Shown here piece after piece: positions 26,406-64,000 of a DNA stretch of 64,000 bases; position 1 is the first letter of the stretch, and each line of letters begins with the position of its first letter. The notes under the pieces were generated by a model that worked only from the letters and a program-made list of their open reading frames with translations, was not told where the DNA came from and did no database searches. Position numbers and translations under genes: made by a program. This DNA comes from Epithemia pelagica. Taxonomy: Eukaryota; Protista; Bacillariophyta. The stretch is taken from assembly GCA_946965045.2 (NCBI GenBank), contig OX337233.1:558001-622000 (forward strand), in the 5' to 3' direction.

Positions 26406-27374
26406 CTACCTGTGTGGTGGATGAAACAGAGTGGTCATTTTCATGGGGCGCTGTGGAATCACCGCCACTCGACACAAACAGAGAACAAAGCGGACGATCC
26501 AATGGTGATGGTAGTTCGTGTGGTCCGTGTTGTTGCCTTTTTGAAACCGAAAATCGGTGTCGTCAAAGTCCCAATGCCCGATGGACTGCAACAAGCTGTC
26601 GTCCGTCGGTGCGAGACTCCGTCTTCCACCGACAGCATAGAGATGCGACCCCACAACGGCGAGTCCTAATTGATGCCGACGTACGGTAAGGGGTGGACCT
26701 TGCAACACCCTCCCGTGAACAATATCTAGAATTTCCACGGACGACACGAGTCCTCCCGATTTCTGACGTCCCCCCACGACCACCATATATCGATCGTGCA
26801 CCGTGGTCGCAGCGCATCCGTACCGGGCCTCCATCAAGCGACACTGCATCGTTTCCCAGGTGGTCGTCTTGTTGCTTGGGACGTATTTGTTTGGATCTGA
26901 TGAAAGCGTAGTAGTTATTGTTGTTGTTGCCCATAGCATCAAGTCGGCAATGGAAATGCGTTCAATGGTATCCCATGTGATAAATCCAAGAGAAATGCCT
27001 CCCAGAGCGTAGACGTGACCACGACAGACGACGGCCGCCAGTTCTCGTCTTGCGACAGTCATGTTGGGTCCCTGTTTCCATTCGTGTCGAGTACTAGTCT
27101 TCCAACAAGGCAACAGTATGACCGTATTGGTGGCATAGTCATTGGCGTGTTTGCCGCCCATGAGCACCACCAGCTGGTCGTGTTGAGGATTGTACGGCGC
27201 CTGAACAACAACCGATACATGGCCATAGCGCCGTCCACCTGCCAGGGGAGGCCATTGATTGGGATCAGTCTGCCATTGCGCTTGTGATTGTTGTTGTTGT
27301 GATGATGAAGATGAGCCCAGAAAGGCAAGGCCCGACAATTCCGCTTGCTGGTGATGATAATTCTCCTCATTCAT
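26406..27374 (-). CDS. Type-B Kelch protein KB1 (4 blades; about 400-bp deletion of blades 5-6 versus KB2)
   Basis: QQAELSGLAF...QW...WPPLAGGRRYGHVSVVV is homologous to the type-A N-terminus; blades VLMGG, YALGG, VVGG, YAVGG. May be a pseudogene. Confidence 0.65.
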   Translation of the reverse strand: MNEENYHHQQAELSGLAFLGSSSSSQQQQSQAQWQTDPNQWPPLAGGRRYGHVSVVVQAPYNPQHDQLVVLMGGKHANDYATNTVILLPCWKTSTRHEWKQGPNMTVARRELAAVVCRGHVYALGGISLGFITWDTIERISIADLMLWATTTITTTLSSDPNKYVPSNKTTTWETMQCRLMEARYGCAATTVHDRYMVVVGGRQKSGGLVSSVEILDIVHGRVLQGPPLTVRRHQLGLAVVGSHLYAVGGRRSLAPTDDSLLQSIGHWDFDDTDFRFQKGNNTDHTNYHHHWIVRFVLCLCRVAVIPQRPMKMTTLFHPPHR

Positions 27375-27689
27375 GGCATGATATCCTTTGAAGCGTCCTG
27401 TGCTGGCCATTGGGATCGCTGTGGGAGGCCAATTCCCAGAAACTATTCCTTCCAAAATGTGGCGGTGTCTCGCTCCACGATTCGAAAAGTATAAGGCGTG
27501 ACTGTTTTCTGTTCACCTCGTCCGGCGTTCTGCACAGCTCAATATGCTGTGTTCGCAGTGCCAGACGGCGCCATGCACGCCGGGCATGGCGTATGATCAC
27601 TCGCAGGTCAACGGCTGTACGCGTGCCGAGATGTTGCAGGCCATCACTGTGACGTGACGAATTGCGACCGGCACCGAACCGAGAGCGTA

Positions 27690-27710
27690 CACTGCAAGTC
27701 ATTTCTAGAC
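27690..27710 (+). repeat. Left TIR
   Basis: cactgcaagtcatttctagac; first 16 nt perfect with the right end, 19/21 overall. Confidence 0.93.
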
Positions 27711-27968
27711 TGAGTAACTATTCTGTTAACCGAATATTAATTAATCGATCCAGCCCTAACCGATTAAGGCGAACGACACTTCCCTCCATTTTTATCCAGT
27801 TACAACGACCGAACATTTCCAATTCGATTTATTGCTAACCGAATACCAAATAAACAAAATTTCAAACCGAATAATTTATAAATCGGTCGATACTAACTGC
27901 TTGAAAGTTAAGTCCGTTCACATCTAACCGTTTAATCGTCTTCGTTATATTTTTATCCTTTTGTGGTT

Positions 27969-29288
27969 TTATTTTCTCTCGTCACATCGTCGACGTTTAC
28001 CATCGTCAGAAGCATCAGCAACACTACTTTCCTTTTTATCATTTTTCTCGGCATTCTCTTTTTCCGCATCATTGTTAAGATGTAGTCGTCGCTTGAGTGG
28101 TTTTTCACTGATCGATCCACCAACAGGGATAGAACGCACTCCCGATGACGAACTCGCATGTTTTCCGAAAAGGGAATTGAGATACAACAAGTCTTCATGT
28201 TTCTCAAAACTCAGAATCCCTCCATGGCAGGACATAACAAGACTCTGACGAGATACAACCGAATTAGCCACTGTATGGATATATTGAATGCATTCATTCG
28301 GAAAATAATACCCAACCTTCAACGACACTTCTCGTTGAGTAGAAGTAGTTGATAGACCGCCCAGTTTGTTCAATTCCTTGTCCATTTTTTTTTGTAGATT
28401 GTATAATCCAATCCAAATACTACGATGTAGACATCGTCTTGGAACCACAAGATTCGATGGATGGTCATACCCAGGATGTGTATTTGGGAAACCCATAGTA
28501 ACCGTAGGTGGGAGTTCCTCGAGGCGATGTCTTGTAGGCTTCACATAAGAATTGATCGTGTTATGCCAAAATCTGACGACATACACGTTGCACATTCCTT
28601 CTGCCCATGCATTACCACTTCTCTCCAACTCACGTAGAGTAAAAACAAAAACCCGAAATAGCAACTTTACTTTGTAGTCTGGTTTTTCCCCATCAATCCA
28701 CAGAACTTCTCTTGATTCGTAAACTTCATCGTTCTTAGATCCACACCCGTTCTGTATCTTGTTGCGCGTGTGTGATGGAAGATTTGGATACCACTTCAAG
28801 CGATTACTGCGAAACAATGGAAGAAACAGCCGGATTCTGATAGTGGTTTTTTCTGAATCTGGATCATCATCTTCATCTTTCACCCGTTCCTCCAACCGCG
28901 CGATAGTTATTTCCTTCGAATCCTCGTCGTCCTCTCGCAATTGAATGGCCATAAACGAGCCAATCCGGATATTATCCATTAATGTCCAATCGAAATACGG
29001 GACGTCGTTCACATAAACGGTATTTCCATACCCTGGCGACGAAGACGAAGACGAAGACGAAGACGACGAGGACGACACAGACATATTTTTGGATTTCTGC
29101 TCACCACACAGTTTTACACCTACACATCCTTTATATATACCATGTGTGTGGTCCTCTCTCTCTATAACCCGCGTTCTCATGCTCATCCGGCGTGCATATA
29201 TCGTTAGTCTGCAATATTGTATGATATTCCAAACCACTGACATCCAATGATTGTTTTGATTTTGTCTATGTATTTTACTAACAGACAT
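27969..29288 (-). CDS. BAH (bromo-adjacent homology) domain protein, transposon cargo
   Basis: IRIGSFMAI / ITIARLEE / IRIRLFL / DEVYESREVLWID / RVFVFT..E / NVYVVRFWHN follow the order and spacing of BAH strands. True start uncertain (29288 or a downstream ATG). Confidence 0.72.
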   Translation of the reverse strand: MSVSKIHRQNQNNHWMSVVWNIIQYCRLTIYARRMSMRTRVIEREDHTHGIYKGCVGVKLCGEQKSKNMSVSSSSSSSSSSSSSPGYGNTVYVNDVPYFDWTLMDNIRIGSFMAIQLREDDEDSKEITIARLEERVKDEDDDPDSEKTTIRIRLFLPLFRSNRLKWYPNLPSHTRNKIQNGCGSKNDEVYESREVLWIDGEKPDYKVKLLFRVFVFTLRELERSGNAWAEGMCNVYVVRFWHNTINSYVKPTRHRLEELPPTVTMGFPNTHPGYDHPSNLVVPRRCLHRSIWIGLYNLQKKMDKELNKLGGLSTTSTQREVSLKVGYYFPNECIQYIHTVANSVVSRQSLVMSCHGGILSFEKHEDLLYLNSLFGKHASSSSGVRSIPVGGSISEKPLKRRLHLNNDAEKENAEKNDKKESSVADASDDGKRRRCDERK

Positions 29289-29877
29289 GCGTATGGTCTA
29301 AGTTGACTCATACGCCTGACAACACATGTCCTAAGAAACACAATAATACTTATATATCGTTTCAAACCATGGGGTTATATATATATCAATATTCAACTCT
29401 TTCAATGACCCTTATGTAATTTTACACCATACACCCATATTCCCCTATACGATAGGCCAGTTATGCAATATTTGTATAATATTCATATTCATACTCCTTC
29501 GTTTGAAACGATTTTACGTAGAGCAGTTTTCATGCTCCCACTCAAATCAAATAACACAACTTCTAGGTAGTAAGACGAATATTGTTAAATTAAATCAGTA
29601 TAACAAATATTACAAAAGAAGTCATTCACGGTTTTGAACTCATTTGGTCTTGCAACAACAATCAAAAGTAAGCCGACCCTTCTTTCCTTTCGTGCATATT
29701 TCGCCTCACTTTTTTCAAGGACCTCGTCTCGTCTCTCTCATCTCTCTCTCGTTTCCTTTTTTTCACATGCTTATTTTTAAGATCACATTCTGTATCGTTT
29801 GTTTCAAGTTATATCCTTTTCTTCTACTAAACAGTCGTTGAAGCATTCCATTCAACAGTCATACAACAGTCCATCTA

Positions 29878-31323
29878 ATGGCGGACGATTTTGCAAATAA
29901 CTGGGGTGCGTCGTATGTTCTACCCGATTTACGCCGGCAGTCAACGAAACGTAAAGCAGTTGATTCGTATATATCATCCGACAAGAGATCAGAGATCGAA
30001 CTTCGTGCGATTATCAAGAACACTACACATGGATATTTCAATTTAGAGAAACTTACTCCCAATGGATCGGACGCCAATTTGTTCGCTATTACAAGCTTAT
30101 GCAATGGGGACACTCATGGTGTCCTCATTGGCTGTGGAAGTTATGTCGCTGGAGATTTGGGTCCTTTACAACCCTGGTCTACCGCCGACTTCCGCGTCAA
30201 TGAAGGCCCATCTTACATTCATGAACCCACAAGCAATGATATCTCTGTCTCAGCACGGTCGAGGACCATCGCCCTACCCTACTGCATTGAAGGTGTCATG
30301 GGAGAACGAGGACAAATTTCCTACGAGGATTTATGTCTCCAAGGTCTTCACAAGAGATGTATTTACCAAGAAGCAATCGGCCAGCGCGTGACTGTTCTTT
30401 TCCTCGAGCTACTGTTGGCCTCGAATGGTTGCACATTGAGCAATCGATTTCTAAAAAGAGTCGGTCTGTTGTCGAAGCATCATGATTTCCATATCATCGT
30501 TGATGAAATACTCACCGGTGCTCGAATGGACACAATGCTTTTAACAATGAATGGACCAAAGGAATTTATTGACCGCGTGGCTTTCGTCACACTCGGTAAA
30601 TGGTGTAAATGCGGTGTGGTTTTGTCTGGATATCACTATGACTCACATCTACAATCGTCTAAAAACCGGATGGACCCACGTGGAGTAACAACAGGTCTCA
30701 ATTGCTCTAATCCCTTGCCTTATTTTCGCAAAGTCCAGGAACTTCTTCCAACAATTCCAGATCGACGAACAAGATGCATCTCTAAGTTTACGTCCATGAG
30801 CTCCCATGAAACCTGGGGCATTGGTCTTATCATCTTCATCCCTCGCTGTTGCCTCGGTACCAGAGCTGGAACGAAAAACAGGTTGCTACCATTACTGAAT
30901 AACACGCCGCCAGATAACATCAAGTCGATACCGGAACCAACATGGAGCAGAGCTAGTGTAAGTCGCCGCACTCTTTCTTGTGTACTAAAATGGACAAATC
31001 AAGTCTCGTTCATTTCAAGTAACTTCTCTCTGGATTCAAAGATACTGTGTCTTTATCACATGATTTGCTTTCTTGTTGAGCACCATGTACCTGGTGGTTG
31101 GATCACATCGTCTGAATTACACGAGCAAGTGACAAAGGCAAGTGACGAACATGAACAAGAAAGTCTACGATTCACAACCTCTATCCTCCGTGCTATCGAG
31201 AGATGTGGGTATCTCAGGAAACAAATGAAAACCCACCGTCGACTACATGGATGGTCCATTATATCTGACCGTCTCAACTATCCATGGCAAGTTACTCCCA
31301 TTGAACATTCCCCGAACGAATGA
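29878..31323 (+). CDS. Class-III PLP-dependent aminotransferase-fold protein with putative C-terminal winged helix, transposon cargo
   Basis: NGSDANLFAI, VLFLELLLASNG, HIIVDEILTGAR, VTLGK (putative PLP Lys at 30598-30600), TWGIGLII; tail ITSSELHEQV...ILRAIERCGYLRK...GWSI. Confidence 0.75.
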   Translation: MADDFANNWGASYVLPDLRRQSTKRKAVDSYISSDKRSEIELRAIIKNTTHGYFNLEKLTPNGSDANLFAITSLCNGDTHGVLIGCGSYVAGDLGPLQPWSTADFRVNEGPSYIHEPTSNDISVSARSRTIALPYCIEGVMGERGQISYEDLCLQGLHKRCIYQEAIGQRVTVLFLELLLASNGCTLSNRFLKRVGLLSKHHDFHIIVDEILTGARMDTMLLTMNGPKEFIDRVAFVTLGKWCKCGVVLSGYHYDSHLQSSKNRMDPRGVTTGLNCSNPLPYFRKVQELLPTIPDRRTRCISKFTSMSSHETWGIGLIIFIPRCCLGTRAGTKNRLLPLLNNTPPDNIKSIPEPTWSRASVSRRTLSCVLKWTNQVSFISSNFSLDSKILCLYHMICFLVEHHVPGGWITSSELHEQVTKASDEHEQESLRFTTSILRAIERCGYLRKQMKTHRRLHGWSIISDRLNYPWQVTPIEHSPNE

Positions 31324-31385
31324 TTCTCGCAACGTCTCCATACGAAGTATATATATCTATAGTAATATATAAAAGCCAATATAGT

Positions 31386-34300
31386 TCAACTATAGTCCAC
31401 ATTATTCGTGATAGCTTCGATGGGGACCAGTCGATATGATCCATCATTCCACCTTTCTCTCCATAGATTCCCAACGGTGTAGTATGAGTTAATAAAATTC
31501 CCAGTCGTTGACGATGTCAGTGGTATAAGGAGCAATACTTCTTGCACAAAATCCTTCTTCATCTCAGCAACAGACTGGAATAGACGTGTTTCGCTTGTCC
31601 CCAACACCGGTGCCACCCAACACATTGTTTGTGTCCATTCTCCTATTTCATCTTGGAAGCGTAATCGGCACAATTTTACCAGGCGCCTGGTATTACCAGT
31701 TTCTTCACCAATGGGTCTATATGCTATGTAAGCATTGTTATCACGGCCAAGTACACCACAAAGAATACCATTCTCGGATAAATGGTCCTCCATTTCGGAA
31801 CGGCTTTTGAAGATCCTTATCATCGAATCACTTTCCCTATTCATTCGAGACTTCTCCTTTGATGCATCTGCTTGGTTCAGCATCCACTGTAGTGTGTCGT
31901 ATTGGTATAGTTTTCGCATTGTTATGGTGGTCCAATCAGCTGTGCTCCTCTTAATGGATAACAATGGTTTGACTTGTTGAATCTTTCTCTCGCCCTCCCA
32001 CCCCCCTTCCCAGTGTAGTATTGCTGGACCCATCTCGGAATGAGCTGTAGCGCACGATAGGATACCCAAAGAATTGGACTTGGTAAAATTGGGATTTTTC
32101 TTCTGTCGATCAGACTCGAAGAGAATGAGATCTACCTCCGCCATATGATCCATATACAAGTGGATATAATCTTCCAAGTTACCGATGGTCTTGCAATTTG
32201 TCATTATCCGTCCCAAGCACATGGCCATGCTGGTTATAAAGCGGCTAAGTGAGCGCCATTCGTCCTTGTACCCTGGAGTGCGGAACCATCGACTGTCACA
32301 TATACTTGGAAGCGACATCAGAAACCTCCAAATTCTTGCACCGAGTAAATAATTCTCGGACACCCAAACTCCAGTACCCCAAGAGGACGTGGATAGTGGC
32401 TGCGCACAAAAGAACTTCGTCGCCCGCAGCGACCTGATGCCCTCCAGCACTTTGTTCACTTGCTTACCAAAAGGAGCAAGACGATTGTATTTCCCAAGCC
32501 ATTTCGACACCATCTCCAAATTACTTTTCGCGTGGCCCAAAAAGAGCATGTGCATTGGAGCGAAATGGCATTTGGCCAGTGCTCCAATCTCCTTCCAACT
32601 TGTTGGGAAGCATATATCTCCTTCGGAAGTCGTGCATTGTTGGTATATTGACTCTATCATGCGGTTTGTAAGTGCGCAAGTCTTTAAGAACGCATTGAAA
32701 TTTCCTTTCGTCCAGAATTTTTTCCTCGAACCATCGCTCTGTATTGTCTGATGGGTCACGTTGTGACATGCGAACAGAACAGCTTGTTTGAGCCAACTAA
32801 CCGTAAGCTTAACGGATCGAAGAAGGATTCTTTTGGTCGGTTTCTTTCTTGACTTCTTCCGACGTTTCTTTCGAACCTGGCCAACGACGTCATTGCTGCT
32901 ATCCACCACGGTAACAACATCATCGGTCACCTCGGAAGAAGGATCTGTCTCGCTCACTGGTATGTCCTCGATACGGTGCCACAAATCGCGGAGAATTGGG
33001 GGCTTAGGAGCATTTGGCGATTGATCATAGACCTGCGGGTAATCGGCTGGTGCTACGAAAACGAAGTTCGGGTCTTCGATTCTCCAGTCAGAGCATGACT
33101 CGCATATATCACGAGCCGTGTTATCAACTTGGAATCCACATTGCAGACGCTGGAGTCGTCTTTTCTTACACTCTGTACACGATGGTAAATGGTTTATTTG
33201 GCAAGTACCATCTACATTGGTAGCATACCCCCAAAAAGCCGAATACGAACCATTGTGGTCTCCGATACGGAATATAGTTGTCCGTTCAGGTCGATCGACA
33301 GAGATCAACAGCTTCCCCACCATAACATGGATAACTTTTTTCAATCCTCCATGATATAGTCGGAGACCTGTCGACGATAATGTATCCAATTCTTCGATCA
33401 TTATCTCTTCAATCTTGTTGTGGTCTTCTCCTTTACTCGATAGACCAATGTAGTAAGTTGTTGATCCACGCACATTCGTTGATTGATGAGGAGGACATAG
33501 TGTATACGTATTACACCAAACTTGATTCCGCGATGATTTCGTGTTGTTTGGATCGAAATCATCGCGCCATTCGCGAAGCCATAGATACAATGTAAATTGA
33601 TCTGAACCGTTACCACTTCTTTTTTGTTCTTCTTTCATGGAGAACAACAGTGACTTGGCACATTGTGTGCTAGAAACACTCGGAACAGCGTTGTCTGGAG
33701 CAATTTGCAATTTTGCCATGAAATCAAAATCATCGTACTCGGTAGCTTTACCTATCTCGTTGGCCAATAAATCGTACAGAGAAACATATGAGTGACTGCC
33801 ATCCGGCGTCGTTTTGGGAATTGGGTGTGGCAGATTGGGAAGAATCGCATTCTTTCCTGTTAAAAAGAACCGATCAAAATCTTCATTTGTTGATGGAAGT
33901 CTGATGTTTTGGAAAATGGATAACTGGCTATGGCCACTATTTCCTGCAGTGGTCAAAATTTCAGCAAATATCTTCTTCTGTTGTTCTGTTAGTTGTACCA
34001 ACAGAGACGAAATCTTTAGACAAAATATTGATTCCTCTGTAGAAACTTGTGCGGAACTCAGACCAAAAGCATTGGCAGTCAACCAGCGTATACCACTGCC
34101 TTTCTCTTTTGCTTCTTGAATGAGATACTTTGGCGTAGTCGATTTTCGGTCAAACCCCATTTGGAATAGTTCCATTTCAGTCGGAATTTGGTCTGTTGCA
34201 TCCAGTATCGGTTGTGGAGATGAAATTTGACTCATTTGGTCGGAATCAAAACAGTCTAAGCCATTTTGGTCATCAACAGGCGGTGAAGATTGATGAATAG

Positions 34301-34601
34301 ACTCTTGCTCCACCTTCTTTTGATGGAATGACGTCTGTGAGTGTCGTTGGACGTATTTCCACTGGGCAATGTACCCCGAAGACTTCCCAGTCCTCTCTTG
34401 ACTTTGGATACAAAGTCGACAACAAAAGAAATTGGTCGACGAAACCCGGCAATTGGCAATGGAATTGGAACAAGAACCTTCATAAAGATATGTCTCCATA
34501 CCGGGAGGAGATGTTTTGACTGGGAGACAGACAACTTCCATGGAGCATTCCCTACAAAGAACGGTGATCGATCGGCTTTCATTGGGTTGGTCATTACTCA
34601 T
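31386..34601 (-). CDS. EnSpm/CACTA-type (Transposase_21/Tnp2-like) DDE transposase, about 1071 aa
   Basis: WRDDFDP...QVW, ELDTLSSTGLRLY, LLISVDRPE, HNG, PMHMLFLG, GPAILHWEGGWEGERK; N-terminal CxxC...H...H zinc-finger-like segment. First ATG 34601 (ORF track starts at TTG 34664). Confidence 0.85.
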   Translation of the reverse strand: MSNDQPNESRSITVLCRECSMEVVCLPVKTSPPGMETYLYEGSCSNSIANCRVSSTNFFCCRLCIQSQERTGKSSGYIAQWKYVQRHSQTSFHQKKVEQESIHQSSPPVDDQNGLDCFDSDQMSQISSPQPILDATDQIPTEMELFQMGFDRKSTTPKYLIQEAKEKGSGIRWLTANAFGLSSAQVSTEESIFCLKISSLLVQLTEQQKKIFAEILTTAGNSGHSQLSIFQNIRLPSTNEDFDRFFLTGKNAILPNLPHPIPKTTPDGSHSYVSLYDLLANEIGKATEYDDFDFMAKLQIAPDNAVPSVSSTQCAKSLLFSMKEEQKRSGNGSDQFTLYLWLREWRDDFDPNNTKSSRNQVWCNTYTLCPPHQSTNVRGSTTYYIGLSSKGEDHNKIEEIMIEELDTLSSTGLRLYHGGLKKVIHVMVGKLLISVDRPERTTIFRIGDHNGSYSAFWGYATNVDGTCQINHLPSCTECKKRRLQRLQCGFQVDNTARDICESCSDWRIEDPNFVFVAPADYPQVYDQSPNAPKPPILRDLWHRIEDIPVSETDPSSEVTDDVVTVVDSSNDVVGQVRKKRRKKSRKKPTKRILLRSVKLTVSWLKQAVLFACHNVTHQTIQSDGSRKKFWTKGNFNAFLKTCALTNRMIESIYQQCTTSEGDICFPTSWKEIGALAKCHFAPMHMLFLGHAKSNLEMVSKWLGKYNRLAPFGKQVNKVLEGIRSLRATKFFCAQPLSTSSWGTGVWVSENYLLGARIWRFLMSLPSICDSRWFRTPGYKDEWRSLSRFITSMAMCLGRIMTNCKTIGNLEDYIHLYMDHMAEVDLILFESDRQKKNPNFTKSNSLGILSCATAHSEMGPAILHWEGGWEGERKIQQVKPLLSIKRSTADWTTITMRKLYQYDTLQWMLNQADASKEKSRMNRESDSMIRIFKSRSEMEDHLSENGILCGVLGRDNNAYIAYRPIGEETGNTRRLVKLCRLRFQDEIGEWTQTMCWVAPVLGTSETRLFQSVAEMKKDFVQEVLLLIPLTSSTTGNFINSYYTVGNLWRERWNDGSYRLVPIEAITNNVDYS

Positions 34602-35201
34602 TGCACTATAGCGATGGAACAGGGTGGGGACAAAGGAAATCCTGCAATGGCGAATCACTGTCAATGAATGTACTTCTGAGATCTTTTGGATGTCTCGTCG
34701 TTCATTGTCGGTATTATGAGTTTAATATCTCGGAACCACAATCCCCCACACGACGCGATGACTCTCATCCCCCAAAACGATATGTGACATGATTGATACT
34801 TATTACTTTCATCTCACGGTATCCAAAATCATGTCTGATAGGTACTCAAAATTTGAAAATACATAGGCATATGGCTTAGTTCATTAACAGACGGTACTCT
34901 GATTCAGGATACGGTAATCGACCAATTAACTAAAGTGACATACTTTAGTCTCGTGAAACAATGGTACTTAGACAGCCAAGTACCGTTCGTGACTCTGAGA
35001 AACCGTTGCTCGTTCTTTGTTTCGAATGAAAATCAAACACGATGGTATGTGGTTCTCGTCCTTTTTTCTGTGCGGCATGTGTGATGTTCTTGATTCTTTG
35101 GCAACACCCTTTTTTCAACTTCGTCTCATTGCCATGGACGTATCGCTTTGATTCGAAATATACCATCCGCATTACAAAAGCTAGGTTTGCCAATTGATAG
35201 T

Positions 35202-38075
35202 ATGGTAAGTTGGATGCATATCCTTAGGTTATAGTGGTATTGTCGAAAGACTCAACGAATGTTTCTGTATTTTCTGTGCAGTCTCTTATTTCTCATATCA
35301 ATGGAGGTGTGTCATCTCTTAATCGTCAGACAGAGGCAACGAGTATTCCATTGAATAACGCCATACCACAAGACAGTACCGGCAATCAACTTGGTAATCA
35401 AGAAGCAAGACAAACTGAACCTAATCCTATTCGCAATATGGAGACTCCGAATGTCCAAGATTCACACACGTCGACAGGATCAACTTCCCCACGTGTATTG
35501 TTGGAATATCCAAGAAATTTTTTCCATCAGGAGACAGGTGTGGGTCCATCAACTTCGGAAGAAGCAGCACTGTTGTGGATATACAGGAAAGGAAGGCGAA
35601 CTGACGGATTGGCCGATACTGAACCTCCAGATGGAAACTTAATGCTGCAAGAAATAAAAGAAATCAGAGACAGTCTCCGTGCGCATATACAGAGAACTTA
35701 TGAAAATGGTCTTCGTGATCGTGCAAAAGAGTTGGATATCCAGATGCCCGGAAAAGCAGCTTTTCCGGTGCACTTGTCTGATTTCCGCAAAATTCTAAAT
35801 GAACTTCCATGTACTTTGGCTAATCAACGAATGGTTTTTGAGTTGGTACTGCAGTTTCACAAGGATCGACATTGGTTGGCCCATGCTATTGATCGGTGGT
35901 TTGACAAAGAAGGAATGACATTGGCCCCGCTGCATAAGCCAAAGTTTGTGAACGGAAAAAGAACCCGCATCTGCCCAACGGATAGAGGTGGCTTCTCGGC
36001 GGTTGCAAGATCTGCAAAATCTGCCATTGTTGGAGGGCTTATGGCTCCAATGTTGCGTAATGCTGGATGGAGTGTTTCCTTGACGAAAAATCAAGGAAAG
36101 AAGCACAATTATGAGACAAAGGTACAATACAACCAGTCGCAGTCGTTCTACGTGGTCACCCAAGAAAAAAAGGTACGTCGTCAGAATTGGGATTCTATAC
36201 GTTATTCCAAGAATGCTATGCCTAATTTGTTGTATGTCTGTCAAGGAAACAAACACGGACTCGAATGTAATCGAAGTCGATAGTGCTACGCCCGATTTTG
36301 AACGGGCCAGTCAAATTTTTACGGAAACGATTGGAGTACGAATTGACGAAGCGTGCGTTAGAAAGTTGTGGGCGAGTTGCTTTGTCCCGAAGCAACTGAA
36401 TGCTATCAAAGTAAATATGACGGGCAAAGAGTTAGTCGTTCAACGTAATCCGGCCGAAATATCGGATCTTACTGAAAAAGGAAACGAAGAATCAGGGGAT
36501 GTATCCCGCATTCCAGTACGGCATCCAATTCAAGATGATCGAGCAACGAGGGTAATCAGGAGTGAGAATGTCAATAAGGAAACACAACTTATTGAAATGG
36601 CTCGTAAAAATTCGACGCCAGAGGAGATAAGTCCTTCGAATGGCGGGGCGATTTCAACAAACGCAGCGATTTCAACAAACGCATCAGTTCCATTGGGTGT
36701 GGCTGCCTGTGAGATAGAGGAAAATCACAATGAGGAGATAGCCGAGCACGAGTCAATTGATTCAGAGAGTATAGATGTGTCACAACCTTTGTTCGAAGAC
36801 GTAGCAAATGCAATCAACAGAGATAACACAGTTGCCATGCAGAAGATGTCGGAAACACGTAAGGACTTTGAGCAAGAATCAGATGATTCGATTGTTATGG
36901 CAATGGGAACGACAGATGGTCATGCCGGTAAAGACAGAGAGAGGAATTCTGATACACAAGATAATACAAATCTTTCGAAGACAGCTCGATCTAATGGTAA
37001 AAATGTACAAGATCAAGAATCGTTGGTTACGCAGGTACAGGAGAGCGGGGATTGTGCTCTAACGACACAAAACAGAAACAGCCAGGGGCAAACAACACTC
37101 CTTTCGAAAGAAGTACAGGAGAGCGGGGGTTGTGCTCTAACGACACAAAACAGAAACAGCCAGGGGCAAACAACACTCCTTTCGAAAGAGAGTGCCCATA
37201 GACAGGATTCACTGGATACGCAGAAGAATGAGAGCAGTGACGTTGCTCTACGGAATAAAAAGGAAAAAAATCAGGTACTGGCCATGCTCGTGGATGGGCA
37301 ATCTCAGTTAGATGAAAGATTGAACACTGTTCTTCCGTTGGAACATGAAAATGTCCAGGAACAAACAAGAACCGAGAATACTCGCGACTCGTCGAAAGGT
37401 GCAAGAGAGGTAGACGTGGGCAAGGTGCGTATATTGTGACAAGGTTTTCTTTGTTTGTGAACAATCGTGGTGAACTGATCTTTGGTGTGTTTGGTAGCAG
37501 GGCAAAAGTTCCCCTCCAAAAAAGAGAAAGGTACGGTTGTATTTTTGTCTTTGTTGAGAGAATGAATCAGTTCTCTCATTATAGTTTCTTCTTTGTGTGA
37601 AAACTTCTGAGTACAGGGTACGGATTGTGAACAGAGAAAACGACAGTCCACTAAACGACCCTCCCCACCGAAACGAGTCTCCCCACGGAAACAAGCCAAG
37701 AAGCATCAGTGTGCAGGAAGTCCGAAAGAGGGAGAGCAATGTGTACAATGTCCAAAAGAAAATCATGATCTGGGCCTTCTGATTCGGCAAGACACGTCGA
37801 CATATTTCAAAGAAGACTATTACAATCGAAATACAAATTGGCCGTCGACATGTGTAAAATGTAACCAAAGGTTCGGAGGCCTTGGTAAAAAGGTAAATCA
37901 AACAAATCCGGTAATGGCTTGCAAAAACGCATGTGTGACGGGTCATCCATGTAAACATGCATATTGTAACGAATGTTACGTGAATTTGATGAGAGAGAAA
38001 ATGAAACAAGACGACATGGAAGCAGGAGCAGGTACGAGATCAATGAGGACACGTAATAAATCAAGAGTGGTATGA
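35202..38075 (+). CDS. Multi-exon transposon gene ending in a PHD/ADD-like Cys/His zinc finger
   Basis: Phase-0 GT-AG introns 36173-36245, 37425-37500 and 37531-37616 join the frames; last exon 37617-38075 encodes CVQC...H...CVKC...CKNAC...HPCKHAYCNEC. The 5' end is uncertain (ATG 35202 plus intron 35205-35281, or ATG 35438). Confidence 0.72.
37035..37190 (+). repeat. 78-bp (26-aa) in-frame tandem duplication
   Basis: VQESG(D/G)CALTTQNRNSQGQTTLLSKE x2, starting at 37035 and 37113. Confidence 0.9.
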
Positions 38076-38586
38076 GGAAAAAGGTGTGGCGTGATGGTAT
38101 AAAGAGATATATGAGAGTTGGTACTACCAAATATAAATTTGTAATAGTTCTTTCGTCAACCTCTCCTCTTTGTGGTGTGTCTGTCTCTATGTATAAATAT
38201 ATAGATCTCGTCTCTCTCTCCATCTCTCATGTCCCGCGACGATCCATATCACACAAAAACGATGTGGTAACTGAATAGTTTAACAGAATAAAGAGTTCAA
38301 TATAATCGGTTGATTGCTTCGATTAATATTAACCGGTTAGATGATGCCTCTGATGACTGACTAATAATGAGAGGTGACAGATTAAATATCTTATCGACTG
38401 AATAGCTTGAGCAGTTAGGCGTTCCGGGTTAACTGATTATATTTTACTTACCGATTATTAACTGGATTGGTGATTTTCTGTCAGAATAAGAGAATATGGT
38501 TAACCGAATGAGGTTTGGGGGGCTGGTTTTTATAAAGAGTTTTAAACTGTCACTATTGACTGTATAAGTTAAACTGTTGGTAAACG

Positions 38587-38607
38587 GTTTGGAAATGACT
38601 TGCAGTG
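38587..38607 (-). repeat. Right TIR
   Basis: gtttggaaatgacttgcagtg, reverse complement of the left end. Confidence 0.93.
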
Positions 38608-38970
38608 TAACCGAAGAGACACGGTGCGAGGATCAAAAGCGTCGGACGATGAACATGTGGGATCCCAAACGTTGGTGGATACATGAAACACACTGTGTCT
38701 CAACGAAGCTCAACGGTTCGTGGAGTTACTGCGTAGGCGATTGTGAATGAGTGCTTCACGTCAAAAGTTGACGAGATGGCTAGGTAGCAATGTTGCGTTC
38801 TTCGAATGTGGGATCCAAAAAATGTAGGTGGATATTTGACACGGTTCGTGGAGACACTACGCCGGAATGAGAGCTTTGCATCAAAAGCTGATATGCCAAA
38901 GCAATGTTTCACATCACAGCAGATCATTTTCTTCGACACACTTTCTTTTGTTTCCGATCATCAAAGGAAG

Positions 38971-40746
38971 ATGCAAGAACAAGCAAGATTGTCCAATCTT
39001 GCCTTTCCTGACACCAACAAAGATGAAATGCCACAATGGAAGTCCGACTCATGGCCGCCGCTTTTGGGTGGATGGCGTCGGTATCATGCATCGGTTGTTG
39101 TGAATGAAGAGAAAAAGGGACAACAGACAGTCGTTGTCATTGGAGGACAAAAAGCAGAGTTGCTCGTCACAAATTCGGTGTTGTTGATGGATTTGGAAAG
39201 GTGGCGAAAAGGTCCAAGCTTGAATCAACATCGTGGTGGACTTGCAGCAGTGGTTTGTAATGGCTCTGTGTACGCAATGGGGGGACGCTGCGATGGCCAA
39301 CTTCTGGATTCAATCGAGCGGATTGATCTTTTGGATTTGTTGAAATCACCATGTGCTACCAACAACAAGACGCATTGGAAGACATTGACTTGTACATTGT
39401 CCACTCCAAGAGACGGATCTCAAGCTGCTGTGGTACATAATCGTTTTATTGTGGTCGTCGGTGGAGATAATTACAGCTTCCTGTCGTCGACTGATATTAT
39501 TGATACCACAGGACAAAATCAACACATTGTCATTCCAGGCCCTTCCATGACGGTTCCTCGATATTTGTGTGGAATGGCTGTTGTTGACCATCGCATCTTT
39601 GTCATTGGTGGGATGAAGCAAGGTTCCAAATTAAACTCTGTCGAATACCTAGACTTCAGTGAAGTTTCTCATGACAACAATGAGGATGTGCATTTCAGCT
39701 TTCCCTCATCGTTTCAATGGAATGTCCACAAGGATCTGGTCCTTTCTGTTCCTCGGTATGCACACGCTGTTGCGAAAGTCGGGACGTGTCTCATTGTGAC
39801 AGGAGGTGATTCCGAGAAAACTTTGAAGTCAGTTGAAGTATTGGACACGAAGCGCAACGTGGTGTTCAACTTACCTGATATGATCGTGGAGCGGAAGGCT
39901 CATAGTGCGGTTTCATTTTTGGACCGAATTGTGGTCATTGGAGGCACGAAGAAGACATGTGAGTCGCTTGCATCGATTGACATGAAGGAAAACACCAAGG
40001 TACGATCTTGTTATCACAAGCCACTGAAGGAACCGCTTTCCTACATTCTCACAACCGTTTCGTGCTGTTTCTTCGCGCAGAGTCTCCAGAACAGGTATTC
40101 GTGTCGTGCTGAGCTCGACATGGAACTTGAAAAAATGAAGAGTAAGATTCAACTTGCAAATAGGCATCGCAGCAATGTCAAGGCGCTGCAAGAGGCCATT
40201 GAGGCGGAATCCTTGCTGCCTCTGATGGAATGGCTTCGTAACCACGACGACAAGTTCCGCTCTGTACATGAACTTCGAGCAGGTATTGACGAACTGAAAG
40301 GGAAATTGAGAGATATAGATAGTTTTATGGGGTGCCTACCAATTGCACGCAAGATTGAAAAACTACGACAGCTTGTCGACTGGAATGAGAGTTTTGGTGA
40401 TCAAAAGAACCTTACTGAACAAGAAGCAGAGCTTGAGGTTGAAGCCGGTTCAGTGACAGGAAAGGAAACACTGCTGGTGTCGGAACGTACCACTCGTGAG
40501 TTTGTCGACTTGAATGTCAGTTTTGGTGATGAAAAGAACCTTGCTGGTCAGAAAGCAGAAGATGAGTTCGAATTCGTATCGGTGACCGGAAACGAAACAC
40601 TACAAGTGTCCCGTCATTCGACTGATGATCTCTCGAATGTTTCTTATAACCCGGAAGAACGACTGATGAAACTGGAAGACATGATGGTTCAACTTTCTGA
40701 TCGGTTCGGTGTGCTTGAGAATCTAGTGCTCTCGAAGAAGAACTAG
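38971..40746 (+). CDS. Kelch + coiled-coil protein K6; probable intron 40000-40080 (81 nt, stop-free)
   Basis: Continuous ORF, six blades, two 43-aa tail repeats. Confidence 0.88.
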   Translation: MQEQARLSNLAFPDTNKDEMPQWKSDSWPPLLGGWRRYHASVVVNEEKKGQQTVVVIGGQKAELLVTNSVLLMDLERWRKGPSLNQHRGGLAAVVCNGSVYAMGGRCDGQLLDSIERIDLLDLLKSPCATNNKTHWKTLTCTLSTPRDGSQAAVVHNRFIVVVGGDNYSFLSSTDIIDTTGQNQHIVIPGPSMTVPRYLCGMAVVDHRIFVIGGMKQGSKLNSVEYLDFSEVSHDNNEDVHFSFPSSFQWNVHKDLVLSVPRYAHAVAKVGTCLIVTGGDSEKTLKSVEVLDTKRNVVFNLPDMIVERKAHSAVSFLDRIVVIGGTKKTCESLASIDMKENTKVRSCYHKPLKEPLSYILTTVSCCFFAQSLQNRYSCRAELDMELEKMKSKIQLANRHRSNVKALQEAIEAESLLPLMEWLRNHDDKFRSVHELRAGIDELKGKLRDIDSFMGCLPIARKIEKLRQLVDWNESFGDQKNLTEQEAELEVEAGSVTGKETLLVSERTTREFVDLNVSFGDEKNLAGQKAEDEFEFVSVTGNETLQVSRHSTDDLSNVSYNPEERLMKLEDMMVQLSDRFGVLENLVLSKKN

Positions 40747-59865: not shown

Positions 59866-62289
59866 CGGAGAACTAGTTGTCTTGGTCCATTTTGTGATGT
59901 TCGATGTATAGGCATAATACGATCACAAATTAATTTATGTCAAATTTCTACTTGTTTGATGCGGTTGGGCCCAAATCCCAAGTCGTCACTTTCGTGTAGA
60001 GCCGGATGCCATTAGGTGATCTTGAAGTCATCGATGGTTTCTTCTTTTGCTTTTGCAGCTACGTGTGAAATTCATACCTGCACAGATTCTTGTCGAGGCA
60101 CAGTGCCACAACAGTCAGCCAACGTGTGCACTTAAGCCCATTGACTATCCCCCATCACAAACTTAGACTCATATTCGACAACCACTCATTCTATCTCTAT
60201 TGTGTCATCCAGCATCCAGCATGTCTACGAATATAACCAAGATCTTGTGTTGCGTGGATCTAATGAGAAGATCCTTCAAGTGTGGTGCTATGGTGATTCA
60301 ATGACCACTCTTTATTACCCGTCGCCAATGCAAGACGACTGTATTCTTGTCTTAACTACATCCATTCCCTCCTTTGTTGTAGTAGTGTGGTAGTTAAATA
60401 CATTGAAGAGTACCACGGGTCCACCGTTTCTCATACCAAACGACATGTACAGACTCGTTGATGGAAAACATACTACTGATGAATGTGAACCCATCAAGGA
60501 AAATCTCGCCAGAATGTTTCGTATTCAAAATTATTTCTCTACCTGTGTGGTGGATGAAACAGAGTGGTCATTGTCGCGGGGTGCTGTGGAATCACCGCCA
60601 CTCGACACAAACAGAGAACGAAGCGGACGATGCAATGATGGTAGTTGTTGTTGAAGTAACCGTTGAAAGACGGCCGTATTCTTGTCGGTCAAGGGCAAGT
60701 ACTCACTCAAATCTTGACCCCAACCCGAAAGACACAAAATACCACCTTGGCCACCACTACTGTTGGAACAACAAGAAGATGAAGAAAGGATGACCATGTC
60801 ATGTTGGGATCACCCACATGTCAAACTGGGTCCAGTCCATACCGTGTGGCGTTAACGGAGCGTGATTCCCAAACTCGCCAATCCTGACATCCTTCCGAGA
60901 CAAGGAGACAAGATCCCACTTTTACCACAGCATGATTGTATCGAGGTTGGGTCAAGGCTAGCTTTGGGTGGATCCTCCAACTGTCCGAGAAGGAGGATTC
61001 ATTCGCTTTTGTAGTAGTAGTCGAAGGAGTCTCCTGGAGGTGTGTGTTGTCCTTGTTATTGCCTTTTTGAAACCCAAACGCGCTGTCGTCAAAGTCCCAA
61101 TACTCGATGGACTGCAACAAGCTGTCGTCCGTCGGTGCGAGACTCCGTCTTCCACCGACAGCATAGAGACGCGACCCCACAACGGCGAGTCCCAATTGAT
61201 GCCGACGTACGGTAAGGGGTGGACCTTGCAACACCCTCCCGTGAACAGTATCTAGAATTTCCACGGACGACACGAGTCCTCCCGATTTCTGACGTCCCCC
61301 CACGACCACAATATATCGATCGTGCACCGTGGCCGCAGCGCATCCGTACCGGGCCTCCACCAAGCGACACTGCATCGTTTCCCAGGTGGTCGTCTTGTTG
61401 CTTGGGTCGTATTTGTTTGGTTCTGCCGGAAGGGTAGTAGTTATTGTTGTTGTTGCCCATATTATCAAGTCGGCAATGGTAATGCGTTCAATGGTATTCC
61501 ATGTGATAAATCCAAGAGAAATGCCTCCCAGAATGACATGTTTGTCATAGACCAATTCCTTGGTGGAAATATTGGTAATGCCGTGACTGGATTTTTCGCC
61601 ATTGGGCAATTTCAAGAGAGGATCAAAGTCCAGCCAATTCTCGTCTTGCGACATTCATGTTTGGTCCCTGCATCCATTCGTTTCGAGTTCTAGTCTTCCA
61701 ACAAGGCAACAGTATCACTGTATTGGTGGCATAGTCATTGGCGTGTTTGCCGCCCATGAGCACCACCAGCTGGTCGTGTTGAGGATTGTATGGTTCCTGA
61801 ACAACAACCGATGCATGGCCATAGCGCCGTCCACCTGCCAGGGGAGGCCATTGATTGGGATCAGCCTGCCATTGCGCTTGTGATTGTTGTTGTTGTTGTG
61901 ATGATGAAGATGAGCCCAGAAAGGCAAGGCCCGACAATTCCGCTTGCTGATGATGATAATTCTCCTCATTCATGGCATGATATCCTTTGAAGCGTGCTGT
62001 GCTGGCCATTGGGATCGCTGTGGGAGGCCAATTCCCAGAAACTATTCCTTCCAAAATGTGGCGGTGTCTCGCTCCACGATTCGAAAAGTATAAGGCGTGA
62101 CTGTTTTCTGTTCACCTCGTCCGGCGTTCTGCACGGCTCAATATGCTGTGTTCGCAGTGCCAGACGGCGCCATGCACGCCGGGCATAGCGTATGATCACT
62201 CGCAGCTCAACGGCTGTACGCGTGCCGAGATGTTGCAGGCCATCACTGTGACGTGACGAATTGCGACCGGCACCGAACCGAGAGCGTAA
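59419..62289. repeat. Segmental duplicate of 25273-27689 (continues as 62289-62890 versus 38608-39200)
   Basis: Collinear Kelch tail, spacer, type-B Kelch and upstream block; contains the empty TA site of the DNA transposon. Confidence 0.9.
60531..61973 (-). pseudogene. Type-B Kelch copy KB2 (disrupted by a replaced segment at about 61531-61632 and later frameshifts)
   Basis: ORFs 61623-62054 and 60821-61654 are two halves of the KB1-like protein. Confidence 0.72.
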
Positions 62290-62649
62290 CCGAAGAGACA
62301 CGGTGCGAGGATCAAAAGCGTCGGACAATGAACATGTGGGATCCCAAACGTTGGTGGATACATGAAACACACTGTGTCTCAACGAAGCTCAACGGTTCGT
62401 GGAGTTACTGCGTAGGCGATTGTGAATGAGTGCTTCACGTCAAAAGTTGACGAGATGCCTAGGTAGCAATGTTGCGTTCTTCGAATGTGGGATCCAAAAA
62501 ATGTAGGTGGATATTTGACACGGTTCGTGGAGACACTACGCCGGAATGAGAGCTTTGCATCAAAAGCTGATATGCCAAAGCAATGTTTCACATCACAGCA
62601 GATCACTTTCTTCGACACACTCTCTTTTCTTTCCGATTATCAAAGGAAG

Positions 62650-64000
62650 ATGCAAGAACAAGCAAGATTGTCCAATCTTGCCTTTCCTGACACCAACAAA
62701 GATGAAATGCCACAATGGAAGTCCGACTCATGGCCGCCGCTTTTGGGTGGATGGCGTCGGTATCATGCATCGGTTGTTGTGAATGAAGAGAAAAAGGGAC
62801 AACAGACAGTCGTTGTCATTGGAGGACAAAAAGCAGAGTTGCTCGTCACAAATTCGGTGTTGTTGATGGATTTGGAAAAGGACACGAAGCAATGGAGGGA
62901 AGGTCCAAGTCTGAATCAAAATCGTGCATTTCATGCAGCAGTGGTTTGTAATGGCTCTGTGTACGCAATTGGGGGAGGCTGTAATGGTAAACGTCTGGAT
63001 TCAATCGAGCGGATTGATCTTTTGCATTTGTGGAAATCACCATGTGCTACCAACAACAAGACGCATTGGAAGAAATTGACTTGTACATTGTCCACTCCAA
63101 GAGGCGGATGTCAAGCTGCTGTAGTACATGATCGATTTGTTGTGGTCGTTGGTGGATACAATAGAGAATGCTTGTCGTCGACTGATATCATTGATACGGC
63201 AGAACAAACTCAACACACTGTGATTGCAGGCCCTTCCATGACGACTCCTCGATCTTTGAGTGGAATGGCGGTTGTCGGTCATCGTATCTTTGTCATTGGA
63301 GGGTCCAATGGAAGCTCCGATCTTAACTCCGTAGAATATTTGGATTTCATTGAAGCTTCTCAAGAGACCAATGAGGATGTGGGTTTCATCATTCCTTTAT
63401 CATCGAAATGGAAAGTGCACAAGGATCTGGTCCTTTCTGTCCCCCGAACGCAACATGCTGTTGGGAAAGTCGGGACCTCACTGATCGTGGCAGGAGGTGG
63501 TACCGTCAAAGCTTTGAAGTCGGTAGAAGTATTGGATACAAAGCGCAACGTCGTGTTCAACATACCTGATATGACCACGAGGCGGAACGGTCCTAGTCTG
63601 GTATCATTGTCTGACATGATCGCTGTCATTGGAGGGTTTCGTCAGGATACGTGTGAGACGCTCGCACTGAGTGACACACTTGAACACACCCAGGTACGGC
63701 GTTTGTTGCAGAAAGAATTGGTTGTGATATACCAAGCGACTGGAGAAATAATTGTTTCAAATATTGTTGTTCTGTTCTCTTACGACACTTTGGTGCTCTT
63801 CTTTTCAAAGACATCTCAGAACATGTATTCGTGTCGCGCTGAGCTCGACATGGAACTTGAAAAACTGAAGAGTAAGATTCAACTTGCAAATAGGGATCGT
63901 ATCAATGTCAAGGCGCTGCAAGAGGCAATTGAGGCGGAATCCTTGCTGTCTTTGTTGGAAGGTCTTCGAGATCAGGATGACAAGTTCCGCTCTGTACATG
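62650..64000 (+). CDS. Kelch + coiled-coil protein K11, runs off the window; probable intron 63694-63810
   Basis: ATG 62650 is in frame with the cag|gtacgg donor; absent from the ORF track because it has no stop within the window. Confidence 0.85.
   Translation, partial: MQEQARLSNLAFPDTNKDEMPQWKSDSWPPLLGGWRRYHASVVVNEEKKGQQTVVVIGGQKAELLVTNSVLLMDLEKDTKQWREGPSLNQNRAFHAAVVCNGSVYAIGGGCNGKRLDSIERIDLLHLWKSPCATNNKTHWKKLTCTLSTPRGGCQAAVVHDRFVVVVGGYNRECLSSTDIIDTAEQTQHTVIAGPSMTTPRSLSGMAVVGHRIFVIGGSNGSSDLNSVEYLDFIEASQETNEDVGFIIPLSSKWKVHKDLVLSVPRTQHAVGKVGTSLIVAGGGTVKALKSVEVLDTKRNVVFNIPDMTTRRNGPSLVSLSDMIAVIGGFRQDTCETLALSDTLEHTQVRRLLQKELVVIYQATGEIIVSNIVVLFSYDTLVLFFSKTSQNMYSCRAELDMELEKLKSKIQLANRDRINVKALQEAIEAESLLSLLEGLRDQDDKFRSVH

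Follow-up and report, generated by a model that had tools for sequence, protein, structure and literature searches.

What a diatom DNA transposon gains from three long genes carried beside its transposase is the question raised by a locus of Epithemia pelagica (contig OX337233.1), analysed here in a window, i.e. the whole stretch of 64,000 nucleotides. Positions 27690-38607 of this window are occupied by a cut-and-paste DNA transposon of 10.9 kb, encoding a transposase (gene T) and three further genes, designated A, B and C. The element is very probably an intact transposon of an undescribed lineage of the CMCT clade (EnSpm/CACTA-Mirage-Chapaev-Transib-Plavaka), composed of a T-B-C core and a variable fourth slot, and it is probably autonomous. 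In the following, W denotes the window element and L numbers denote the loci of its relatives.

Ends, target site and gene layout

The element is bounded by short perfect terminal inverted repeats (TIRs), whose arms form the second-longest inverted pair detected by the repeat finder in the region, and by a 2-bp target-site duplication (TSD). A paralogous Kelch unit of the same array is uninterrupted at the corresponding position (...GAGAGCG-TA-ACCGAAG...), with one TA and no element. The left flank (27037-27689) is 96.6% identical to 61633-62288 and the right flank (38604-39917) is 89% identical to 62283-63608. The comparison of the filled and the empty site is clean, and the insertion is precise. 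The ends, the TA duplication and the empty site at 62287-62288, as given in the original prediction from this DNA, were thus confirmed by the TIR, flank and paralogue comparison. The motif TAACCG is concentrated in the subterminal regions: of the nine copies that the element contains, seven are found no further than 400 bp from a terminus, against a rough expectation of about 0.4 copies for the terminal 400-bp zones.

The gene order A(-) B(+) T(-) C(+) forms the two divergent pairs that had been described before (coordinates in Table 1). The earlier view of four intact long genes holds for A, B and T, which are uninterrupted open reading frames (ORFs), but not for C, which requires splicing. 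The element was inserted between two divergent Kelch genes, 26406-27455(-) and 38806-40743(+). The supposed decay of the surrounding host genes is not evident in the two immediate Kelch neighbours, which retain long ORFs with strong Kelch matches.

The transposase and the clade of the element

The ORF of gene T matched 66 relatives. Through alignment of 25 sequences, the motifs WxDDFDP, VDRPER followed by GDH, and HWEGG..GERK were identified as invariant or nearly so, together with the residues D347/D350, D436 and E865/E871. The ligand-type residues C475-x2-C478, C500/C503 and H679-x4-H684 are conserved as well, and the window transposase keeps all the family-invariant residues. With catalytic residues assigned by motif and not by structure, the signature reads D..D..C(2)C..H(4)H..E, which is that of the EnSpm/Plavaka (CMCT) clade. 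Transposases of this clade possess C(2)C and H(3-4)H motifs, and the clade is marked by CA..TG termini and duplications of 2-5 bp (PMC12730594). The motif set of T, the CACTGCA..TGCAGTG termini and the 2-bp TSD correspond to this description; the short TIRs, CACTG ends and subterminal short repeats are of the EnSpm type. In the Atlas protein-language-model search T scored 0.96, with 203 shared features, to Plavaka (PF18759)/Transposase_21 (PF02992) clusters, and the structural neighbours of its best Atlas match are plant and animal TNP2 (Transposase_21) transposases. The PDB profile search with T returned spurious matches only.

The TSD of 2 instead of 3 bp and the lack of a PF02992 match separate T from canonical plant CACTA elements, and the different termini separate it from fungal Plavaka A and B. 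Judged by these characters, T would represent a separate lineage within the CMCT clade, and the CACTA/EnSpm-like TIR transposon originally proposed is retained in this form, on the strength of the motifs, termini and TSD length. The window copy, with its TA duplication and short TIRs, might also be placed in another superfamily duplicating TA or other 2-bp sites (Tc1/mariner or PHIS/ISL2EU-type). However, sibling elements duplicate TG, CA and CG too, T is 1071 amino acids (aa) long, bears the CMCT motif set and has Plavaka/Transposase_21 neighbours, and no Tc1, mariner or DDE_Tnp_4 match was obtained in Pfam. The varied 2-bp duplications in the family and the CMCT motifs in T led to the rejection of this assignment, which is regarded as extremely improbable.

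A family of related elements

A second copy (L001), 99.1% identical over 10,795 nt, is located elsewhere in the assembly; its flanks are different, one of its ends has an intact TA/CACTG junction, and the opposite end is truncated by 130 bp. The occurrence of such a similar copy at a different site indicates recent transposition; the element has been recently mobile. At least six diverged sibling elements, with a transposase identity of 38-62%, have a common layout, the same gene order and CACTGCA ends (Table 1).

The family extends to a second genome, assembly ERZ25042306, in which L012 (8299-18697; 10,399 bp; TSD TG) has a perfect 20-bp TIR beginning with CACTGCAA. Its transposase is degraded into at least six ORF pieces, and B and C1, the conserved first domain of gene C, are nearly intact. 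The family reaches high copy in this genome, with clusters of proteins at 90% identity comprising 41 members for B and 204 for T. The environmental contigs L006-L009 carry the same genes, with CACTGCAA termini wherever the ends are present. The CACTGCA terminus is common to L002-L005, L012 and L008/L009. The TSD is 2 bp long in six elements (TA in the window, and TA, TG, CA, CG and TG in the others); the duplication of the family is therefore not TA-specific and varies among 2-bp sequences.

Accessory genes maintained by the element

T, B and C form a core of three genes travelling and diverging together, present also in the second genome and in environmental contigs. The linkage of B and C to T persists down to transposase identities of 35-40%, and was observed in environmental contigs as well as in two genome assemblies. 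B lies beside T in the environmental contigs L006-L008, L017, L024, L025, L035 and L037, and beside C1 in L015, L018, L020, L022 and L029. Among the metagenome loci detected with the B profile, 16 have enough flanking sequence to be informative; in 10 of these T or C1 adjoins B, the order being either C(-)B(+)T(-) or, alternatively, B(+)T(-)..C(+).

The ratio of non-synonymous to synonymous substitution rates (dN/dS), calculated by the NG86 method, was 0.088 for T, 0.086 for B (dS 0.63), 0.055 for C1 and 0.11 for the zinc module of gene C (C3) between L010 and L011, the sole usable pair, as most others are synonymous-saturated (pS 0.75-0.9). Judged from this pair, T, B and C appear to be under strong purifying selection. 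For A every pair is synonymous-saturated, with pN of 0.26-0.32, and the 2 synonymous and 5 non-synonymous changes between the two 99% copies are too few to judge. The maximum-likelihood trees of T and B from eight elements agree, with support, in the topology ((L006,L007),L008,(L005,(L010,L003,(W,L002)))); the tree of C1, though of poor resolution, is compatible with it.

Capture of host genes by DNA transposons happens, the fold of B is that of a common metabolic enzyme, and one sibling (L004) lost B and kept its ends. The extra genes might on these grounds be passively captured host genes (Pack-type), or cargo of benefit to the host, without a role for the element. Against this stand the linkage of B and C to T over such transposase divergence, the congruent T and B trees and dN/dS values of B and C equal to those of T. 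In addition, the N-terminus MxDDxANxWG and the winged-helix fusion of B (see below) are unseen in the matched cellular aminotransferases, and no close cellular homologue of B was found. Passive capture is accordingly considered very unlikely. The original proposal that the accessory genes are maintained by the element agrees with the sibling synteny, the dN/dS of 0.05-0.11 for B and C and the congruent trees; in the dN/dS comparison it had suggested, the values of B, C and T proved similarly low and not neutral. The co-occurrence of all four genes between CACTG ends, which it had named as a check, is found for the T-B-C core but not for A, which is confined to some subfamilies of this genome.

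Table 1. Features of the window element (window positions) and of sibling elements in the same assembly (positions within each locus)
Feature	Position	Strand	Remark
Whole element	27690..38607		layout A(-) 27969-29288, B(+) 29878-31323, T(-) 31386-34601, C(+) 35438-38075
TSD TA, left copy	27688..27689	.	single TA at the empty paralogous site
Left TIR CACTGCAAGTCATTTC	27690..27705	+	16 bp, perfect
Left subterminal region, AT-rich, TAACCG(A/T) repeats	27706..28020	.	motif count
Gene A, BAH-domain protein (predicted)	27969..29084	-	likely start Met at 29084; ORF open from 29288
Gene A, predicted BAH fold	~28572-28970	-	model residues 23-155 = A residues 107-239
Gene B	29878..31323	+	uninterrupted ORF
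Gene B, predicted class-III aminotransferase fold	~29980-31002	+	AlphaFold 2 model, fold and profile matches
Gene B, putative C-terminal winged-helix-like domain	~31033-31260	+	model topology, weak profile matches
Gene T, DDE transposase, 1071 aa	31386..34601	-	invariant motifs, Atlas neighbours
Gene C, exon 1, conserved C1 domain	35438..36172	+	184 clusters
Gene C, intron 1, 73 nt, GT..AG, phase 0 (predicted)	36173..36245	+	donor conserved in six elements
Gene C, exon 2, conserved start, then variable acidic low-complexity part	36246..37436	+	3' end approximate
Gene C, C-terminal exon, putative zinc module	37611..38075	+	open frame; conserved block 37719-38075
Right subterminal region, TAACCG-type repeats	38280..38591	.	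motif count
Right TIR, reads GAAATGACTTGCAGTG, then TA	38592..38607	-	exact reverse complement of left TIR
TSD TA, right copy	38608..38609	.	single TA at the empty paralogous site
Empty paralogous target site, single TA	62287..62288	.	other Kelch unit of the tandem array
L002	6118-16717		10,600 bp; TSD TG
L003	6084-16718		10,635 bp; TSD TA
L004	5876-15519		9,644 bp; TSD CA; without B
L005	6316-16390		10,075 bp; TSD CG
L010, L011			siblings in the same assembly; ends not mapped

Gene B: an aminotransferase fold with a putative winged helix

Gene B has 33 relatives, several of which possess a precomputed PF00202 match; the window protein itself reaches 12.4 bits against this family, below the gathering cut-off of 30.5. 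The family profile matches taurine and gamma-aminobutyric acid (GABA) aminotransferases (E about 5e-5). The AlphaFold 2 (AF2) model of B has a predicted local distance difference test (pLDDT) score of 85.8 and a predicted template modelling (pTM) score of 0.89, and its top fold matches in the PDB, the AFDB clusters and the ESM Atlas are all class-III enzymes. The closest in shape are acetylornithine/ornithine aminotransferases (TM score normalized by target 0.63-0.66 over about 303 residues). No NCBIfam equivalog came near its cut-off; the best, weak, was a daptide RiPP (ribosomally synthesized and post-translationally modified peptide) aminotransferase. From the model and profiles, B is best described as a very divergent member of the class-III aminotransferase fold and not as the orthologue of a known enzyme. 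The earlier suggestion of a gene with a pyridoxal 5'-phosphate (PLP) enzyme fold is hereby specified to class III, with an invariant Schiff-base lysine.

The residues of B were mapped to canonical motifs by alignment and general family knowledge. Invariant in 25 members are G63-S64, D209-E210 (VDEI[LM]TG), K241 (TLGK), T272 and R335 (GTKNRLLP), as well as the family-specific N-terminus MxDDxANxWG. G63-S64 presumably form the phosphate loop, K241 the Schiff-base lysine and R335 the arginine for the substrate carboxylate. The PLP site appears complete, and the intact catalytic set, including R335, indicates that a small amino-acid-like ligand would be bound. Conservation of this set is compatible with both a ligand-gated regulator and an enzyme.

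Residues 386-461 of B are modelled as helix-helix-helix-strand-strand, and the profile of this tail weakly matches MarR and Fur winged helices at the recognition-helix and wing motif (E 0.011-0.09). None of the matched cellular aminotransferases covers the C-terminal tail. A prokaryotic origin of B was considered and rejected: the single match obtained from 185,579 prokaryotic species genomes lies on a 3.4-kb contig labelled 'MAG: bacterium' (metagenome-assembled genome, MAG), which is probably mis-binned eukaryotic DNA. GenBank hypothetical proteins, labelled 'MAG: bacterium' or 'Planctomyces sp.' and located on contigs of 3-4 kb, are relatives of T and B (P0066 cluster; L040); most likely they are eukaryotic transposon DNA mis-binned into bacterial MAGs. 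A viral origin was also considered, and the IMG/VR search revealed no relative of B or T.

In some metagenome loci B is followed on the opposite strand by other ORFs, namely a conserved ORF of 326 aa (L033, 992-3503; L038, 2-2281) and one of 509 aa (L016, 2530-5561), without a Pfam match or similarity to T. B may thus also travel with another partner.

Gene C: a spliced gene with an unannotated domain and a putative zinc module

The C1 domain, of about 225 aa, is represented in the protein library by at least 184 cluster representatives at 50% identity and has no match in Pfam, the PDB profile search or the Atlas. The position of the donor site AAG/GTACG is shared by W, L002, L003, L004, L010 and L011, and the site is followed by an unalignable stretch of 70-100 nt and then by a conserved exon. 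The C-terminal block is presumably joined by splicing as well, since no in-frame ATG is present upstream of its conserved part; this 3' splicing is predicted from conservation and frame.

The C-terminal block contains a putative zinc module with the invariant ligands C47, H52, C81, C84, C104, H112, C114, C119 and C122, in the pattern C-x4-H ... C-x2-C ... C-x7-H-x-C-x4-C-x2-C. Even in distant relatives the linkage of the block to C1 and the common orientation of the two are preserved. The module of four orthologues gave no PHD or ADD match at E<=10, and its sub-threshold matches are a partial RING (E 0.006-0.04) and an A20-finger (E 0.08). The C4HC3 cross-brace pattern of PHD and ADD domains is not present. 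The PHD/ADD-like label attached to C in the original prediction is therefore withdrawn, for want of a profile match and because of the different ligand pattern.

The variable exon of C contains an exact 18-bp tandem duplication (36648-36683) and a 78-bp repeat present twice (37035-37189). Contigs of three public sequencing runs, which probably derive from a sister copy, are without one 18-bp unit, and its absence indicates that the linker of C changes by repeat slippage.

Gene A and the exchangeable fourth slot

Six homologues of A were found, all in this assembly. The AF2 model of A, built from an alignment of nine sequences, reaches a pLDDT of 60-74 over residues 21-157, and in the Foldseek search of the PDB all 50 best matches were BAH domains (E 5e-4 to 0.04), among them those of polybromo, DIM2, BAHCC1, EBS/SHL, DNMT1, TNRC18, ORC1, Sir3 and ZMET2. 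The AFDB-SwissProt models align to A through their BAH domains, the VIA aligner superimposed A on BAH with Z of 6-8.7 and a root-mean-square deviation of 3.2-3.9 A over 110-130 residues, and the Atlas language-model features of A indicate BAH. At the sequence level, eight members gave no BAH match in Pfam at E<=10 and no PDB profile match. These comparisons of the predicted structure support A as a lineage-specific protein of the BAH fold, as originally proposed. Consequently, of the two chromatin readers once ascribed to the element, the BAH protein stands, by its model, and the PHD/ADD protein does not.

A is the least conserved part of the element. It is present in W/L001 and L002-L004, and absent from L005, L010, L011, L012 and all environmental relatives. 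In L005 (15375-15962), L010 (8463-9200) and L011 (8499-9341) its place is taken by a different conserved gene, encoding 195-280 aa and 33% identical between L005 and L010 (E 5e-36); Pfam gave no match for this gene, and profiles show no similarity between it and A. The replacement of one gene by another in this position indicates that the fourth slot is exchangeable between subfamilies.

Genomic surroundings of the copies

Across the window (1-64000), about ten diverged Kelch-repeat gene units with identities of 75-93% follow one another in a tandem array. Kelch arrays also surround L001 (4708-6024, 18988-20148) and L002 (1-3, 18555-19523). The location of the three examined copies (window, L001 and L002) in such arrays could reflect local hopping, target preference or the abundance of the arrays. 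An insertion polymorphism was considered and rejected, since the 'empty' junction contig in the public runs has the diagnostic base of the paralogue and is not an empty allele. The neighbourhoods of the siblings are rich in other mobile elements (L001 23095-23171, L010 1-7153, L004 1-2424), whose genes encode DDE_Tnp_4 (Harbinger-type) proteins and copia-type RVT_2/RVT_1 polyproteins.

Weight of the evidence and proposed working of the element

Several observations weigh against an intact CMCT-clade transposon with a three-gene core. T and 24 relatives match no transposase family in Pfam even at E<=1, and the clade was assigned from motifs, termini and TSD length, and from neighbours in the language-model and structural comparisons, not from a phylogeny with reference transposases. 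In six of the 16 informative metagenome loci B has no detectable T or C neighbour. L004 has intact CACTGCAAATC ends, a CA duplication and the genes T, A and C, with no trace of B, and such an element implies that B is dispensable in cis. The winged helix of B is based on model topology and matches of E about 0.01. Confidence in the model of A is no more than moderate (overall pLDDT 59.6), and the VIA Z scores of A are rated as middling by the tool. Finally, the element sequence was found in three public runs, all of them DNA assemblies (contigs up to 509 kb, without joints), and a search restricted to RNA libraries returned none with element sequence.

For the intact transposon with a T-B-C core, which is still considered very probable, the following working can be proposed. 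T would cut at the CACTG ends and integrate the element with a 2-bp staggered cut. The winged helix of B, the zinc module of C or the C1 domain, or several of them, might bind the subterminal TAACCG repeats in a TnpA-like manner, the BAH domain of A may contact nucleosomes and thereby tether the complex, and the PLP domain of B would act on the DNA or chromatin of the element itself, or on its regulation.

For B itself, the tentative first choice, by analogy, is a ligand-gated regulator following the logic of MocR/GabR. A true enzyme that the winged helix would guide to the element is the next possibility and held with somewhat more reserve; what probability remains is left to other roles. One version of the enzymatic role deserves separate mention, although it must be judged rather unlikely: a DNA- or chromatin-directed PLP enzyme acting at the repeats of the element, together with C and A, and transaminating or otherwise converting an amine of a histone tail or of a modified base. 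As an anti-silencing module, the BAH domain would read a histone mark and the PLP enzyme, tethered by the winged helix, would modify a base or side chain and so block or erase silencing. The BAH fold of A, the conservation of the catalytic set including R335 in 25 of 25 members of B, and nearest folds among omega-aminotransferases (acetylornithine, GABA and lysine-epsilon) speak for such a module, and enzyme-bearing CMCT and other transposons acting on DNA or chromatin provide precedents (PMC12730594; 10.1101/2025.02.11.637652). The BAH gene, absent from most of the family, is not essential to the role of B. We know of no PLP enzyme acting on chromatin or on eukaryotic DNA. The anti-silencing module is for these reasons given a small probability; if it proves right, B would stand as the first epigenetic 'eraser' based on PLP, comparable in function to the TET/JBP enzymes of fungal transposons.

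Comparison with known systems

Transposons of the CMCT clade that carry several conserved accessory genes directed at DNA or chromatin have been published before. The red-algal giant Plavaka elements, of the EnSpm superfamily, carry the accessory genes PAG1-3, of which PAG2 encodes a DNA methylase with SET and PAG3 a ParB-like protein with a 2-oxoglutarate (2OG) oxygenase (10.1101/2025.02.11.637652). TET/JBP genes are borne by fungal DNA transposons of the EnSpm, PlavakaB, KDZ and other groups (PMC12730594), and giant EnSpm and KDZ elements with accessory genes of unknown kind are present in Ectocarpus (PMC12477816). The unusual features here are a PLP enzyme fused to a putative winged helix, and C1 as an accessory module of a transposon. 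In the full-text literature no eukaryotic transposon bearing an aminotransferase and no EnSpm/Plavaka element of diatoms was found, Repbase lying outside this search. The same applies to a lineage with CACTGCA termini, a 2-bp TSD and TAACCG-type repeats, for which no published description was found. Within this scope, the statement of the original prediction that no element with this gene set had been described remains valid.

The closest parallel is the red-algal Plavaka family, which belongs to the same broad transposase clade, combines a transposase with three long-conserved accessory genes, and has, in at least some of these genes, chromatin- or DNA-directed domains with a putative DNA-binding part next to repeats. 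Its accessory set has been proposed to help proliferation (10.1101/2025.02.11.637652). In contrast, none of the PAG2/PAG3 Pfam domains, compared by description, occurs in A, B or C, and the red-algal elements are 17-19 kb long and constitute a third of the genome, whereas the elements here are of 10-11 kb and low copy. In both the fungal TET/JBP transposons and the diatom family, a CMCT transposase bearing the C(2)C and the H(3-4)H motif is combined with termini of the CA..TG type and TSDs of 2-3 bp, and an enzyme gene is mobilised together with the transposase. The fungal elements differ in encoding an Fe/2OG dioxygenase with a known substrate, 5-methylcytosine (5mC), where B is a PLP enzyme by its fold. 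The termini of fungal Plavaka are TGT..ACA (A) or CATCA..TGATG (B), in contrast to CACTGCA..TGCAGTG here (PMC12730594).

Plant En/Spm elements, encoding TnpD and TnpA, also have CACT(A/G) termini, short TIRs, subterminal short repeats and a large transposase with a second protein presumed to bind the repeats. However, their TSDs are of 3 bp and not 2 bp, their proteins arise by alternative splicing of one unit and not from separate divergent units, and the extra genes here are of different kinds. Membership of the plant TnpA family was ruled out, since neither Transposase_21 (PF02992) nor any other family in Pfam was matched.

The MocR/GabR regulators resemble B in joining a PLP aminotransferase fold with a retained lysine to a winged helix, a pairing that suggests ligand-controlled DNA binding by B. 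There, an N-terminal GntR winged helix precedes a class-I fold, whereas in B the class-III fold would be followed by a C-terminal MarR-like winged helix, i.e. in reversed order. B is eukaryotic and transposon-borne, with no sequence relation to these regulators, so the analogy is one of design. VANDAL elements of Arabidopsis, with their VANC protein, may serve as a model for an accessory set which recognises the repeats of its own element and counters silencing. They belong to the Mutator superfamily, unlike the present family, VANC has no BAH, PLP or zinc-module domain, and its function is experimentally established, whereas it is conjectured here.

Significance

Giant CACTA/Plavaka/KDZ transposons with accessory genes are now emerging in fungi, red algae and brown algae, and the accessory genes recognisable so far encode enzymes of DNA and chromatin: TET/JBP, SET proteins, methyltransferases and 2OG oxygenases. 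The diatom family adds a different chemistry, a protein of the PLP aminotransferase fold with an apparently intact active site, on which selection seems to be no weaker than on the transposase. With C1, a widespread unannotated domain (at least 184 clusters at 50% identity) now appears as an accessory module of a transposon. The family also offers natural variants for the comparison of gene functions, namely the B-less L004 and a fourth slot filled by the BAH gene or by another gene. Should B act on DNA or chromatin, its epigenetic activity would be of a new kind; should it be a ligand sensor, transposition would be coupled through it to the metabolism of ecologically important algae.

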